A stretch of 64,000 nt of DNA from Saccostrea cucullata. Lineage: Eukaryota. Numbering within the stretch: the first letter of the stretch is position 1; each line of letters opens with the position of its first letter. This document shows, piece after piece, positions 40,970-57,211 of the stretch. Below the pieces are notes generated by a model. That model searched no databases and had not been told where the DNA came from. It saw only the letters and a list, made by a program, of their open reading frames with translations. The DNA lies in contig NW_026923439.1 in assembly GCF_032062105.1 (NCBI RefSeq), forward strand, positions 1 through 64,000, in the 5' to 3' direction. A program made the translations under genes and the position numbers.

Positions 40970-41134
40970 TTAACGTTTCTTCAATTTGTCTATTTTATGT
41001 CCTCCTTTTAATCCTACATAGACACCGACAGCAAACCCTGCTAGAAATGTGAACGTAACGATCCAAAACAACGCCTTCCCTTTAACCTCTATCTCCAGAC
41101 CATCTTCTCCAATCTCAATGTCCAAGTCTGACAT
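40970..41134 (-). CDS. 54-aa single-pass membrane microprotein with a glycine zipper (not in the ORF track)
   Basis: Hand translation: MSDLDIEIGEDGLEIEVKGKALFWIVTFTFLAGFAVGVYVGLKGGHKIDKLKKR. Purine at -3, acidic N-terminus, TM helix with GxxxGxxxG, basic C-tail. Confidence 0.65.
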   Translation of the reverse strand: MSDLDIEIGEDGLEIEVKGKALFWIVTFTFLAGFAVGVYVGLKGGHKIDKLKKR

Positions 41135-41689: not shown

Positions 41690-42255
41690 AATATTATATA
41701 AATGGTGCCTGTTTTGGAGGGTAACAGTTGAAACTGCCACCCCTCGGAAAACCATTGTCAACCGACGCGTCAGCAGAGGTTGACAATGGTTTTCCGAGGG
41801 GTGGCAAAAATATGTGTTTATTATACAAAAATTAAAAAAGAAAAAAATCGTCGATCATCTTTACGTTCACGTTTAGAAAGCTTTCAAACTCCTCGCTACT
41901 TCTAAAAAGATTTACTGACCTTTTTATTGTTTGTTTGATACTCTAAGAGTCTTTTATCATATAAAGTTTCATTATTTTTGCACTCGCAAGCGCATGATTC
42001 GTCTGTCATTTGTTGTTTTCAAGTACATCGGACGCAAGCTTTTAGTGACGTCAAGTTTATTCCAGTTCTTTCAAACGCGCAACTGACGTTTTGAGAATTC
42101 TACGGTGAACCGTACGCGCATAATATCCACGCATGTGGCATTACCGTTGTGTTACCCGTTGTCACATGCGTTGTTAAGGCTGAGGGTAATAGAACGGATT
42201 GTTAACTGCGTCTAAACCAATCAGATTTTAGTATTTAACATGAAAGTATAATAAA
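41690..42255. mobile_element. Non-autonomous element with a long internal palindrome
   Basis: tgccacccctcggaaaaccattgtcaacc-(loop)-ggttgacaatggttttccgaggggtggca at 41735-41806; boundaries approximate. Confidence 0.55.
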
Positions 42256-42790: not shown

Positions 42791-42862
42791 TCCTCGGTAG
42801 TATAGTGGTAAGTATCCCCGCCTGTCACGCGGGAGACCGGGGTTCGATTCCCCGCCGGGGAG
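42791..42862 (+). tRNA. trnD-GUC: tRNA-Asp (anticodon GTC)
   Basis: TCCTCGG/CCGGGGA acceptor stem, A-box TAGTATAGTGG, anticodon arm CCCGC-CTGTCAC-GCGGG, B-box GGTTCGATTCC, discriminator G. Confidence 0.97.
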
Positions 42863-42881: not shown

Positions 42882-43491
42882 TAGGATATATATCTTTTAC
42901 ATTTTTTTGCATTTTCAATCAACCGTTTCATAGTATTTATTTGCAGTAAATCTGATGACGTTTTTTTGTTTTATTATTCAGTGGAAGCATTTCCGGAGAG
43001 AGAGAAGACACGGACAGTATTGGAAGACTTATGTAGATCTGTTTGAAAAGGATATAGTGTTTCTGGCGAAGAAGTGGTAAGTATGGACTCATTTAATTGA
43101 TTCAACGGATATAAAGTGAAATAGTCAAACAATGTTTTGTGTTTACATTGACTTTAAAAAATATTATGAGCCACCAAGTACAGTGTAGCAGGTCATGAGT
43201 ACAAAGTGAAAGTAAGCTGTTGTGAACAAGTTTTGGTAAAATCCACTTGTATTAATCCATTTGACTAAAATTTCATCCCATTCTCCGACAGGGTATGACT
43301 CGATGATCTAAAATGTCTTATAAAATTGTGCCAAATTCCGCAAATTTTGTAGATACATGGTAGGCTTTTACGTCTACTTTCATTTTCGTTTGTGTTTCAC
43401 TTAGGCATGTTAAAACATAATATATCAACATACACTAGTCTTAGTCTCATGTTTTATATTGTAGATCAAAGGACCTGACTTTTCCTAAAGT

Positions 43492-43683
43492 ATGGCCAGA
43501 CTCCGCGAAGTATCTGGCACCACGGCCCTGGTTTTGGCGGGTCTGACGTTTGCCTTGGGGTTCTACCTGGGTTACAAGGCAAAAGCTTATCGCCTTCGAT
43601 ATCTCCATAATAAAAGAGATCGTCTGATGAATAAACTGAACAAAGCAACAGAGGACATTCAGTATACAATGAACAATATTTGA
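43492..43683 (+). CDS. MTLN: Mitoregulin-like mitochondrial microprotein (63 aa)
   Basis: EVSGTTALVLAGLTFALGFYLGYKAKAYRLRYLHNKRDRLMNKL aligns without gaps to human mitoregulin as I recall it (DVSERTLQLSVLVAFASGVLLGWQANRLRRRYLDWRKRRLQDKL), 17/44 identical. Strong Kozak (A at -3, G at +4), acceptor at 43464, upstream non-coding exon ending at 43076 (G|gtaagt). Confidence 0.8.
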   Translation: MARLREVSGTTALVLAGLTFALGFYLGYKAKAYRLRYLHNKRDRLMNKLNKATEDIQYTMNNI

Positions 43684-44580
43684 CAAATACTCGGTTTAGG
43701 TTGTCTGCAATCTCTTTGATATTTTTTAGGTCATATAGATAGGCCTGTATATTTATTGAAATGTCAGCACATAGGGATTATTGGTAACAGAATTTATGCT
43801 GATATAATTTATTGTACATTTTATATGATATATTTTAACATTTACTTGAATATTGTATATCAAGTAATATACTGTATATAATTGAGATTAAAATTTTCTA
43901 TAATAATCATATCCTGTATCAGCCTGAGACACATATATATAGATCACAAAACAGTAGAATGTGAACCAAAAATATATTGTGTTTTATCATAAGTACAGGC
44001 ATCAGGATCACGAATCAAACTTAAACTTATAATTATTCAAATTTTTAATCGCCTATAAAATATTTATCAATTATAGAATTTATTTTTAAATTCGCACATA
44101 ACACCTCAGTGAAACAATATTGAAAAATAGTTTTATATATTTTGGTTTGCTTGACTTCTACAACATTTTATTATAAAATGAAGAGGCTTACTTTTTTTCA
44201 GTTGCCGATTTCTTTCAGTACCATTTTTTGGCATACAATACTACATTTCCCTTGTATCACTTTACCCTAGTACAAACTAGGGAAGGGGAATGTCATTGAG
44301 CCTTTCAGTGAACATTTTTAATAGTAAAAGTAATGTTGGGGAAAAAAGTGAGAGGGCCAGTGTAATACACTACTGTACATGTATATATACCTTCCCGTAT
44401 TATTAACCCTGGAAGATTTGTAGTTTGTACCTAATCTTCCTTCGAAGTGTACTGGTATTATTTTTAATTACATGTGTATATGACCCCTCTGTACATCAAG
44501 AAAAAGTTCATGCTCATTAATTTTTTTTAAATTAAAAATGTTATTTTATAAAGGTGTAAAAAGTAGTACATGTGCCGAGT

Positions 44581-45257: not shown

Positions 45258-46730
45258 TTAATATTTTATTTGCTCGTAAAGTGACAAAAGTTCTGTGAAA
45301 GACTGAAATCTGTAGTAAGTTAAAAATGGGTACAAAATTAGCTGAATGACTCGGTAGAAGCGGTCCTTTGCCATGCCGATATCCTGCAGACCCACCAATG
45401 AGTTCACCATCCAGTTGGACATGTTGATGCTGGATAGAAGCAGTATCAGAAGCTTGGTGTTCTGTGAAATGTCAAGGTCGTTTCCTAGGTCCTCAAATCT
45501 GTGACCCACGATGATGAAAATCGTTTGATAGAGGACTCCTACACTATTGGAGACTCTATAGACGATGAAATATGGTCCGCGCTCCTCTACAGCAATGGCA
45601 GATACACTGAAAGCAATGACTGCCATAGAACTCACTGTTAACGCCACCTCGTTGAAGTTGACATCTTTGGTGTGTAGGACAAAGTTCAGCTTACGGAAAA
45701 AGTTGTGATTTATCGCTAAAATTAACATTAGAACAAACAATTTTATAGAACATACGAAACCTATGGTTATATTTTGCAAATTAGAACTAGGTGCAATTGT
45801 AGTCCATGGCAGAATAACTAGTGTTGAGATATTCCAGACAGCTGCAGTGACCAGAAATAGACAGATCTTGATTTTCGGGAAGGAAAAGACTGGCAGCGAT
45901 TTTTGTAAAATGCTCGTCGAATGGCTACAGTTACCAGACAGATGAGAATCACGAGGATTTTTAATTAAACCTGGAATAGTTTTTCTTTCGGTCAGTCCAA
46001 AAACGAAGGATGTTGCCAGAACTGCAAACTCTAGGGTCACGGGCAGCCTGAAAGGCATGGTGATTTTGGCGAATTTTTTAATTGAGTCGCTCTGCACATA
46101 TGAACAGTTTACCTGGTAAGTCCCATTCTCATCAGGGTTTAACAACAAATCTCTGTTTTCTGAAATTCTGAACAAAATAGACCTTATCCAGTCCACTAGG
46201 TTTCCTATCGCAATGAGTGACATGAGATATTTCATTTTGGCGGAACATATGAATGTATACCGACTTGTACATGTCATAAAAATGACTTGCACAAGAACAA
46301 ATACAATGTTCACGGAGCCATGAACCAAAAGGGAGTATAACAGCTCATCTTGTACTGCATATTTACAGTGTAAGTAAAATATAATGTAAATGAACGAGAA
46401 GGTACACTTTACAATACCAAAGAACCACAGAAAGCCCATGTTTACTTTTGTCACTGTCGGGATACGCGAATCCTTGCACCCTATCCATTCTTCTTGTTGG
46501 CAGAACACCGACACAATGAGATATACGGTGACGAGCAGACCCAAGAAGCAAGTCAATATGGAGATGATGTCCAACACAAGATTTGCGGTGACATCACCCA
46601 TGCCTCTCTCCTCGTAGGTAAAAATGGCCACCGAAAGAATCCCAAGAATTGCAGAGAACATGAGCACGGATCCTACATCTCCGTCAAATAGTTCTCCATA
46701 ACGGTTTCTTCGCAGCTGATGCATCTCCAT
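45258..46730 (-). CDS. Otopetrin-family proton channel, intronless and divergent
   Basis: 490-aa ORF with about 12 hydrophobic segments in two halves. Motifs VFVLVQVIF, GNLVDW, PVTLEF, YQTIFI, NMSNW and YPFLTYYRFQS correspond to the otopetrin Q, N-x3-W, P-x2-IEY and P-x2-IFYRFHS signatures. Confidence 0.85.
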   Translation of the reverse strand: MEMHQLRRNRYGELFDGDVGSVLMFSAILGILSVAIFTYEERGMGDVTANLVLDIISILTCFLGLLVTVYLIVSVFCQQEEWIGCKDSRIPTVTKVNMGFLWFFGIVKCTFSFIYIIFYLHCKYAVQDELLYSLLVHGSVNIVFVLVQVIFMTCTSRYTFICSAKMKYLMSLIAIGNLVDWIRSILFRISENRDLLLNPDENGTYQVNCSYVQSDSIKKFAKITMPFRLPVTLEFAVLATSFVFGLTERKTIPGLIKNPRDSHLSGNCSHSTSILQKSLPVFSFPKIKICLFLVTAAVWNISTLVILPWTTIAPSSNLQNITIGFVCSIKLFVLMLILAINHNFFRKLNFVLHTKDVNFNEVALTVSSMAVIAFSVSAIAVEERGPYFIVYRVSNSVGVLYQTIFIIVGHRFEDLGNDLDISQNTKLLILLLSSINMSNWMVNSLVGLQDIGMAKDRFYRVIQLILYPFLTYYRFQSFTELLSLYEQIKY

Positions 46731-52084: not shown

Positions 52085-55000
52085 ATGGATGATAAATCAA
52101 ATAGACTACAATTAGTTCAACTAAAATTGATCAATGTTTTGGATTTTCTATCGAATTACCTCCCCCTTGTAAACTGTCATTCTAATGACTTTATTCTTAA
52201 CAATCATTGGCACACATTTTTGTGTGAGTCCATCAGAAAAGAACTTGAAACCCTCAGTACTAGTGAACTTGTATCAGTCTTGAGTCATACAATTGATAAC
52301 AAGAAATTAAGCCAACAGGAGACTTGTAGAGAAGATGGATCTGATCCAAGTTCTTGGAAATTCAAATGTGAATATCTGGATACAACAAAGACAGAAAGTG
52401 AAATTAGTGAAATTTATTCACCTGAGATGCAGAAATTGCCCCCTCACTGGGTTCATGGAAACTTGTATTCATTTTTATATGATGCACAAAGGAACAGTCT
52501 TCAAAACTTGGGCATTCTTTCACAGATTGAAAATCTTTTTGAAGATGTAAATGCTGCAAATGAAAACTCTGTGTTTATTTCCACATTTATGAATCAGAAA
52601 AAGACTCATGAAGTAGAGGTAATGGGAGAACTGTGTTTTAAGCTGACTAAGAAATATGACACTAGTGTGGTAAGTAAACCTGCAGGATATATTTCATTAT
52701 TTTGAAATTGTTAGTTTATAAATATGGTATTGCCAGTATCAACAACTTGAATAATGATGCACCTAACTAGAACAAATCATCTTATTGTAAAAAAAAAATG
52801 AATTTATGTGAAATTTAAATTTAACATAAATCAAAGGAGAAATCAAACTGAAAATTTTGAAAAATAAATGAAAGGGTAACTTATGTTTTTTGTGTATTTT
52901 TAGGTAGTAGATCTAGGGAGTGGTAAAGGATACCTCAGTACACACCTGGCATTCCAGCATAAACTGTGTGTGATTGGTGTAGATGCCCAAAACATCAACA
53001 CAAAAGGGGCCACAAAGAGGGCAGACATACTATCCCGGCAGTGGGAGGGAATAACTCGAAATGAAGTTTTACGAGCTGATAAAGTTGAGCCAGGAAAGAT
53101 AGGTAAAAAGAAGAAAAAACTTATGAAGAAGTTAAATCTAGAAAAAGACATGCAGCAACAAAAGGACTTCAAAAAATCTGATGATTTGCATTGTGGGATA
53201 TCTGATGAACTCCTTACAGACTTCTCCGGTTTATTTGATGATTCTGGGGAAATTGGTGATGGTAAAATAAGTGGAGATTTCAAAGATAGTTTACCAGTAA
53301 CTTGTGATTCCTCAGACCTGGCAGAGAAAATTCAAAATAGTGCGACCATCAAAAACAACTGTAAAGGAGGAGAGGGGAAAGAACATCTAAGCAAATCTCA
53401 AACAGAAGTCAAAACTAATATAGAATGTGAGCATAATTCTAATAGTAGTAATTTTTCTCATAAAAAAGTCAACACAAAATCTTCAACACTAAAAGCCAAC
53501 CACTTTCCTGTTACCATGTATATACACACAGACTCCAACCTTAGTGACATAGTAAACAAAGCTTTGGCACAGAATTCAGCACACACAAAAGGCAAGGGAG
53601 CATCATCCACAGATTTCTGTGAAATTTCTTCAACTGAACAGGGCAAATCAGTCTGCTGTGATAGAAGTGATCAGGAATGGGACAGGAAAAACTGTGTTCT
53701 GCTGACAGGGCTCCATACTTGTGGTGGTCTGGGTTCCAATATGTTAAGACTGTTTGTTGAGTCAGAAGATGCCAAAGTCCTGTGTAATGTAGCTTGTTGT
53801 TATCACCTCATGAGTGAGGAATTTGTTGCCAGTCCATTTAAAGAGAAAGGTACATCTAGCTTAACATTAATATAAGTGCATTCAGGAAAAAGTGCATTTT
53901 ATATGTGTCAGTTTGATAAAGATTCAATCATATAGCCATGACTAGTGAAAAGATGATGTTTTGATTTTATTTTTATCTATTGGTATATAATTATTGTAAA
54001 AGAAATATAACCTATGTTTCTAACATCATTTTGTAGAAGACATGATTGAGGCTCCAGGCTTTCCTCTTAGTGACTTTTTAAAGAGAAACAAAGTTGGTAT
54101 CGGGAGACAAGCCAGAAATCTGGCCTCTCAGTCCGTCAACAGACGCGCCCAGGACGAGGAGGTATATCTCTCATAACCCAGTCTTGGGAACTCCATTACA
54201 TTGTGTATTTTATATATTAAATTGTCTTCTTATGTTTTGTTTGCGTAGGTGCTTGCTAAACAGTTTCCCAGAATGTTGCTGCAAGTTATACTTCGGGATC
54301 AGCTGGGATATGTGAGAAGTGATTGGAAAGGGCTGAGAAAGTTAGACCAGAAATGCAAGGGGATGTATGAATACGTTACAAAGGCATTTGTCAAGCTAGG
54401 AGTTCCTACAGGAGGAGTAAGTTTTTAGCTTAAATAAGTTGTGTTGCTGAAACATTATGACCAAGATGGTAAATACCAACAACTGTTTTACCCTGACATT
54501 TGACAATTATCGGGCCATGACCCAAAGATATAACTTTCACCTTTATCGTAAATAAAATTTTATGCCTAGTTTACTTGAAAGTTATGGTAAAAAGTGATGA
54601 AGCTGTAGAAAAGAGCTGACAAAATTTGTTCTGAATGGCATGTAAATAGAAAAGTGTTCTTTCACACATGTAATCAGATGGGTAAAAACTATAAACAAAT
54701 TTATATTGATAGATCACTGAGGAGCTTATCGATTCCTATTGTGAAAAGTACAAAGACCAGAAGAAGAAGTTTGCTGCATTCTTTCAGTTGAAGACTGCCC
54801 TGGCTCCCTGCATTGAAGCTGTCATTCTGTTGGACAGGCTTTGTTTTCTTCTCGAGCAGGTATATTATCATTTTGTTTGGATGCAGAAACAGATTTATCT
54901 CCCTTTACGCAGCTTCAGTTCTTGCATCACACTGGTTTATGTTCAATGCATTCATAAAGATTTCATTGTAGATTAAAAAAAAAACGCCAAAAAAACTCCA

Positions 55001-56060: not shown

Positions 56061-57211
56061 ATGACTTCATCCCCAGGTGCCCCAGATCCAGCCTTCACCT
56101 TGAGGGGGAGTGGCAGTCCCATCACCTGTCTGAAATTTACTGACCAGGCAGATCAGAAGCTTTATTCCGGTTCTCAGGAAGGAACTATCCATATCTGGGA
56201 CATGAAGACCCATAGACCACTAGAAACACTGGCTGCCCACCCTGGACAGTCCGTTCTGTGGATTGAGTTCATCAGTGGTGATGAGATGGTGACGTTTGGA
56301 AGAAATGGCATTGCTAATATATGGAAAGCTGCAGAAGCAAGTTGGACAATTACAGGTTAAATGATTATTTAATAACTTCTTTGTTAGTGTTAGACATTTT
56401 ACGCAGCTATGTTGTTACTTTGCATTAAACTACATGTAAAAGGTAATTTCCACATACCAAGATATATCGGTATACTGGCTACTTATACATCTATTCTGTA
56501 TATATTTTGTAATTTATTTGTGTAAGAAATTTGCCAAGTACCTTATTATTTCAAATGTTTCATATTGATCTAATTCTAGGTAACATTCAGACATCTGTGA
56601 TGGGGTTTTGTCCTGGTGCACTGCTGAAACAGGACAATTTACTGGCTCTTCCCAGTGAGGAAACATCAGCAGTTGATTTATACGATATCAAAACTCGGGA
56701 GAAAGTTGGACATTTCCTTGATTCTGGCTGTAAACATGGAATGACTATGAGTATCAAGTCAATTTCCGACACATCTCAATTTTTTGTGGGATATGAAGAT
56801 GGTTCCATTGGTTTATGGGATTGCAAACATTCTGGAATCCTGGACAAGGCTAAATTCTTTGAGGAATGTGTGATGTGTCTTGACTACAGCTCTGGTGCTA
56901 ATCTTGGAATCTGTGGATCTCCCAGTAAGACGTTATCGACCTGGAACATTACTGATAACCAGATTAACAAGGGAACAAGTTATGAAGTGAAAAACCCTGG
57001 ATTTAACGACGTAAAAATTCGTAATGACCAAAAAATATTAGCCACTGCCGGTTGGGATCACCAAGTACGAGTGTTTGGTGTGAAGAAATTCAAGCCTTTA
57101 GCTGTATTGTCCTACCACAAGGACAGCATTCAATGTCTGGCCTTCTCAAAAGACAATATGTTAGCCTGTGGTTCTAAGGATCAACATATCAGTCTCTGGA
57201 AACTTTACTAA
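56061..57211 (+). CDS. GNB1L: WD40 protein GNB1L (ASTRA/Asa1-like)
   Basis: Exons 56061-56355 and 56580-57211. N-terminal PDPAFTLRG; C-terminal KIRNDQKILATAGWDHQVRVF...PLAVLSYH...GSKDQHISLWKLY. Confidence 0.93.

Follow-up and report, generated by a model that had tools for sequence, protein, structure and literature searches.

Mitoregulin (MTLN), a small protein of mitochondrial membranes, passes for vertebrate-only in reviews. A short reading frame in the oyster Saccostrea cucullata, which an earlier note had proposed as a mollusc mitoregulin, raises the question of whether the family is confined to vertebrates and of what such a protein would do in an invertebrate. We examined this frame within its window, the whole stretch of 64,000 nucleotides that was analysed, whose relevant features are collected in Table 1. 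Overall, the best explanation, with a probability that we put at roughly 85% by analogy with the vertebrate protein, is a mitoregulin-family gene whose product would cross a mitochondrial membrane once, form oligomers and interact with anionic lipid or with enzymes of lipid metabolism.

The frame runs through 63 codons without interruption to a TGA, and its ATG stands in the strong Kozak context described earlier, given by A at -3 and a G at +4. The description of the frame as spliced was inexact: the 63-aa ORF at 43492-43683 on the plus strand stands, and its coding sequence is free of introns. We predict an intron in the 5′ UTR, outside the coding sequence, because there is a donor-like GTAAGT at 43077 and an acceptor-like AG (43463-43464) 27 nt upstream of the ATG. 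For the ortholog in Crassostrea virginica, RefSeq models an acceptor 10 nt ahead of the corresponding ATG, with a donor in comparable context, and acceptor-like sites also precede the ATG at other oyster, mussel-like, isopod and plankton MTLN loci. The Logan and ENA contigs of the orthologs appear to be genomic (unspliced). A scan of the 1.17-Gb assembly gave one match to the family (38.2 bits), and the gene is thus single copy.

Table 1. Features of the oyster MTLN locus, in window positions
Feature	Position	Strand	Evidence
Partner microprotein, 54 aa, one predicted TM helix with glycine spacing	40970..41134	-	Homologs, alignment, conserved linkage
tRNA-Asp(GTC), between the two small ORFs	42791..42862	+	ARAGORN; Rfam RF00005, 60.4 bits
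Upstream non-coding exon, predicted only; ATG-stop inside at 43031	42982..43076	+	Acceptor-like and donor-like sites
5′ UTR intron, predicted only	43077..43464	+	GTAAGT donor at 43077, polypyrimidine, AG acceptor ending 43464
Mitoregulin (MTLN)-family ORF, 63 aa, single coding exon	43492..43683	+	Translation, Pfam PF22002, genome scan, dN/dS
TM segment (predicted), residues 7-28, with F20-x2-G23-x3-G27-Y28 at its end	43510..43575	+	Hydropathy and alignment
Basic helical tail, residues 29-57, amphipathic in later part	43576..43662	+	Charge, helix model, alignment
Closest hexamer resembling a poly(A) signal, ATTAAA; weak, as the DNA is AT-rich	43887..43892	+	

The homology proposed for this ORF is borne out by a profile score. 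The Pfam family MTLN (PF22002) matched it at 39.1 bits (E 6.9e-10) against a cut-off of 27, while the runner-up family reached 14.4. The match joins residues 14-57 of the query to positions 11-54 of the profile, 44 positions on each side, the same length as the stretch over which 17 putative identities with human MTLN had been counted. An exhaustive phmmer search returned 15 matches, 13 of them above the MTLN cut-off; the other two (P0009 and P0013) fail Pfam MTLN and were excluded from the set. A profile search returned 40 proteins, among them one from Armadillidium, and all 40 were already annotated as PF22002. We then have a family alignment of 34 members, every row of which matches PF22002. 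In the numbering of the oyster protein, F20, G23, G27 and L38 are invariant throughout, position 28 is aromatic in 34/34, and R34, K/R41, R42, L45 and K48 are nearly invariant.

Since no vertebrate MTLN was among the matches of the protein searches (phmmer and profile), the family is tied to vertebrates through the Pfam model and a cluster of the ESM Atlas. When the Atlas was queried with the family member P0008, the top cluster was named 'Mitoregulin family protein' (0.93), with Mollusca as the commonest phylum (the phylum is known for only 2 members), and the next was a chordate 'Mitoregulin' cluster (0.88, 196 of 256 features), which we regard as a lead. When the oyster-type sequence was the query, a feature search of the Atlas led to unnamed clusters alone (at most 0.84); the Atlas structure search and a JGI metagenome scan gave no match. 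The best PDB match, the MNLL chain of an algal complex I (E 0.0068 with the single sequence), was lost when a profile was used and was discarded. Taken at the level of sequence, the assignment of the ORF to the mitoregulin family is, in our judgement, close to certain.

A short protein of this kind could nevertheless be a convergent look-alike, that is, an unrelated conserved microprotein with one TM helix and a basic tail whose composition earns it a score on the MTLN profile, as happens with bacterial LapA domains. The sequence is short, and 16 of the 34 members cross-match LapA_dom at E<0.05, one of them above its cut-off; bacterial LapA/YciS (PF06305) has the same layout, with a glycine-spaced TM helix and then a basic helical tail. 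We compared the ORF with shuffles that keep the composition of its TM segment and tail, a control proposed in the earlier note. The real ORF scored 66.1 bits, far above the maximum of 13.3 bits, or 31.1 bits with finer segments (5,000 shuffles each), although the HMM was built from matches to the query itself, which makes this control partly circular and Pfam the cleaner test. On the family HMM, 80 enterobacterial LapA proteins reached at most 9.2 bits, compared with 66-95 bits for MTLN members. The direct comparison with E. coli LapA by hhalign was weak (38% probability over 19 columns), and LapA_dom did not match the oyster ORF at E up to 10. In addition, 34/34 members have MTLN as their best-scoring Pfam family, and the language-model search independently leads to the chordate Mitoregulin cluster. 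We consider a look-alike very improbable, and the resemblance to LapA would be one of architecture; a LapA ancestry of MTLN is weak and unsupported. The LapA cross-matches concern P0017 and alignment A4, and P0062 is labelled 'YciS (DUF1049 family)' by JGI.

The comparison among oysters speaks to whether the frame is a gene at all. Orthologs are 86% identical (P0001, from Logan) and 76-78% identical (C. virginica), and the pairwise dN/dS values among the three oysters are 0.034, 0.076 and 0.040. Codon differences fall overwhelmingly at third positions (31-34, vs 3-6 at second positions; Fisher p <= 3e-12). Synonymous sites are near saturation, and the ORF can be aligned between oysters while its flanks cannot. 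The ORF is therefore a real gene under strong purifying selection, and the conservation in related oysters on which the original proposal had been made to depend was found, at 76-86% identity and dN/dS 0.03-0.08. A chance ORF, a pseudogene or a contaminant is effectively refuted by this selection. This reading is also contradicted by the orthologs in independent assemblies and by the window itself, AT-rich and eukaryotic in character, in which methyltransferase and WD40 genes lie; the C. virginica ortholog sits on a 48-Mb chromosome.

The anatomy of the protein agrees with the earlier description of one TM helix followed by a basic amphipathic tail. The most hydrophobic 19-mer spans residues 7-25, with a moderate Kyte-Doolittle mean of 1.54, and supports a single predicted TM helix. 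Residues 29-50 contain 8 K/R and 1 D/E (net +7), and the conserved residues of the tail are K31, R34, L38, K41, R42, L45 and K48. Across the 34 members, the net charge of the tail ranges from +5 to +9, with a median of +7. Over residues 29-42 there is little hydrophobic moment (0.13-0.16), compared with 0.46-0.69 from residue 35 to 57, so the amphipathic character belongs to the later part. AlphaFold2 predicts one continuous helix at 9-62 (mean pLDDT 81.8, pTM 0.38), a model that informs on little except helicity.

How old is the family? C. virginica (a mollusc), Armadillidium nasatum (an arthropod) and chordates (from papers and the Atlas cluster) all carry MTLN, and hence, judged by these sequences, the family is older than the protostome-deuterostome split, in keeping with the age of at least the bilaterian ancestor that had been suggested. 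Over the aligned ORF, the C. virginica and A. nasatum proteins are 78% and 37% identical to the oyster protein. Distant members are only about 40% identical to it, and identities among invertebrate members are 25-50% overall; mammalian and zebrafish mitoregulin are 71% identical (PMC7214441). Most of the other matches come from marine samples. No MTLN above the cut-off occurred in 301 bacterial genomes (of the phylum of an Escherichia genome) or in 14 control genomes, and the two sub-threshold bacterial matches are alternative frames of unrelated genes. One locus (L013) holds two MTLN copies with identical protein, at 3155-3406 and 10001-10252, 6.8 kb apart among reverse-transcriptase genes; its member P0008 is the top scorer on Pfam MTLN (60.5 bits).

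That such genes are easily missed by annotation, as the earlier note supposed, is illustrated by both named invertebrates. In C. virginica, LOC144620493 (XP_078317463.1; L008 10001-10404) is an 'uncharacterized' protein of 114 aa that appears to be mis-modelled with a 51-aa N-terminal extension, and it is already annotated as PF22002. In A. nasatum, Anas_04337 (KAB7499499.1; L017 9320-9517) is a 102-aa hypothetical protein with a PF22002 tag, in which a spliced and apparently wrong C-terminus replaces an intact single-exon ORF of 65 aa. We found no report of an invertebrate MTLN in published papers, within an incomplete coverage of the literature. Invertebrate MTLN is thus implicit in databases, through Pfam pre-annotation and the ESM Atlas, in which the proteins are unnamed, and the papers searched are silent about it. 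With invertebrate members already labelled in Pfam and the Atlas, the finding is less surprising than the note assumed. The oyster gene is a further member of a known family, and it contradicts the statement in the literature that the family is vertebrate-only.

What the oyster protein does can be approached through its vertebrate relative (MTLN/MOXI/MPM/LEMP, encoded by LINC00116; PF22002). The two share small size, a single-copy gene, one N-terminal TM helix without a presequence (both predicted in the oyster), and a basic C-terminal helix. They differ in length (63 aa in the oyster, 56 aa in vertebrates), and the oyster ORF apparently occupies the last exon, with an intron before it in the 5′ UTR; in human, the first exon holds the ORF (PMC6091870). 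The oyster gene also has, unlike known mitoregulin, an invertebrate host and a head-to-head partner microprotein. Tyr28 of the oyster falls on profile position 25. If Pfam numbering is assumed to equal human numbering, it aligns with human Trp25, and an Asn aligns with human Trp37; by this alignment, Tyr28 is the likely equivalent of Trp25, a conservative change.

In vertebrates, Mtln has no classical presequence, is thought to be imported by means of its positive charges, and binds cardiolipin (PMC6091870). It was associated with CPT1B, CYB5B and CYB5R3 (PMC10469944), and it self-associates into a complex of about 66 kDa that is disrupted by W25V (PMC11732159). Its mechanism is disputed, and even its membrane is: the outer membrane, with a cytosolic C-tail (PMC10469944), or the inner one (PMC6091870). 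Mitochondrial single-pass helices are less hydrophobic than those of the ER (PMC10469944), and the modest TM hydrophobicity of the oyster protein fits the mitochondrial type. By analogy, the oyster protein would lack a cleavable presequence and would be directed to mitochondria by its weakly hydrophobic N-terminal helix and the flanking positive charges; its helix would cross a mitochondrial membrane once. The small-residue face of G23 and G27, together with the aromatic residue 28, may let the helices pack as a homo-oligomer. The basic tail, which is conserved, would bind anionic lipid (cardiolipin) and/or enzymes of lipid metabolism (CPT1, CYB5B/CYB5R3), and this binding would tune fatty-acid oxidation and membrane integrity. 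Of these proposals, the mitochondrial location is very likely on the vertebrate analogy, and a lipid-related mechanism shared with vertebrates is somewhat favoured.

The head-to-head partner deserves separate consideration. Its start codon lies 2,358 nt from that of MTLN, and its ORF is single copy in this genome. Databases hold at least 15 proteins of its conserved family (54-59 aa, single TM), which has no Pfam assignment. The head-to-head pairing and the paralogy of the two genes had been proposed earlier from the window, and we found the linkage conserved in the oyster and at two more distant loci, L009 and L018, which are probably mussels to judge by their repeats. Tandem partner copies stand head-to-head with MTLN in both (6986-7156 and 7342-7518 on the minus strand of L009; 3638-3811 and 3987-4157 on the plus strand of L018), at a spacing of 1.5-2.8 kb, and the MTLN there is about 45% identical to the oyster's. 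Between these loci, the ORFs alone align, and the partner copies show pN 0.06 vs pS 0.58. The linkage is not obligatory, since a search of the 10 kb around MTLN revealed no partner ORF in C. virginica, in Armadillidium or at the remaining long loci.

The origin of the partner is less clear-cut. PF22002 matched 0 of 18 partner-family members. On the MTLN HMM, they score 4-12 bits, which is above local shuffles (mean 0.3) and overlaps the LapA controls (maximum 9.2), and hhalign aligns the two families with 76-89% probability over 19-25 TM columns only. Because the similarity is confined to the TM segment and the scores overlap the LapA controls, paralogy of the partner with MTLN is possible but unproven. 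The short glycine-spaced TM segment also recalls STMP1/DUF4535 (PF15054; E 0.28 for the window ORF and 0.01 for the best of its family); with 14 residues matched and 11.3 bits against a cut-off of 28.3, this assignment was rejected. A larger proposal would make MTLN, an ancient animal microprotein, and a highly diverged, MTLN-derived head-to-head paralog, which would have duplicated again at the mussel-like loci, into a conserved two-gene unit of bivalves, with a shared bidirectional promoter and joint assembly in a mitochondrial membrane. We regard this as speculative and rather unlikely; if it were true, the two products would form a hetero-oligomer specific to this lineage, which might adjust the oxidation of lipids in animals of the intertidal zone.

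The partner bears equally on whether a true MTLN homolog might have diverged in function, with other partners or another location, for example as a hetero-oligomer with the partner microprotein. The identity of only about 40% to distant members and the differing Trp positions leave room for this, and the head-to-head arrangement in the oyster and two more distant loci suggests co-regulation. On the other side, the core motif and the net charge of the tail are kept in 34/34 members, and no partner was found near MTLN in C. virginica, in Armadillidium or at the other long loci. We judge a diverged function improbable and retain the reading of a mitoregulin-type mitochondrial helix.

Several further observations concern the neighbourhood. 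The tRNA-Asp is possibly within the 5′ UTR region of MTLN; its 5′ 30 nt also begin the partner-ORF contigs L111 and L112 of a second oyster, and it is absent from mussel-like loci (L009). L111 also holds a degenerate second partner copy at about 135-253. In the RNA-derived contig L115 (1-1346), a spliced glutaredoxin-3 CDS is joined to the partner-ORF region. A GLRX3-partner fusion was dismissed as a probable chimera, as the joint has no acceptor and GLRX3 lies on another contig here; the contig still suggests that the partner gene is transcribed in its oyster of origin. Between the microprotein genes, a long inverted repeat at 41694-41835, with near mirror-image ORF translations on opposite strands, is probably a small foldback element. 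An intronless ORF of 490 aa at 45258-46730 on the minus strand, convergent with MTLN, would encode a multi-pass membrane protein without a Pfam match at E up to 10. Motifs near the C-terminus of this protein are reminiscent of otopetrin proton channels. Farther downstream on the plus strand are the exons of a methyltransferase gene at 52085-53875 (Pfam Methyltransf_32, 42.3 bits), presumably METTL25-like, and a WD40-repeat exon at 56531-57211, which we take to resemble GNB1L.

With these members, MTLN drops off any list of vertebrate innovations and becomes a case of small genes lost in annotation. The weight of the finding is limited, in that the label already exists in Pfam-based databases and the finding brings no new mechanism. 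The vertebrate-only alignments used in the field, however, are too similar to reveal which residues are important, and invertebrate MTLN isolates about ten near-invariant ones: F20, G23, G27, the aromatic residue 28, R34, L38, K/R41, R42, L45 and K48. These residues are few enough to be mutated one by one in human cells, and the invertebrate members allow rescue to be tested directly across phyla. The value of the oyster gene lies in a far deeper alignment for a disputed protein and in an uncharacterised linked partner.
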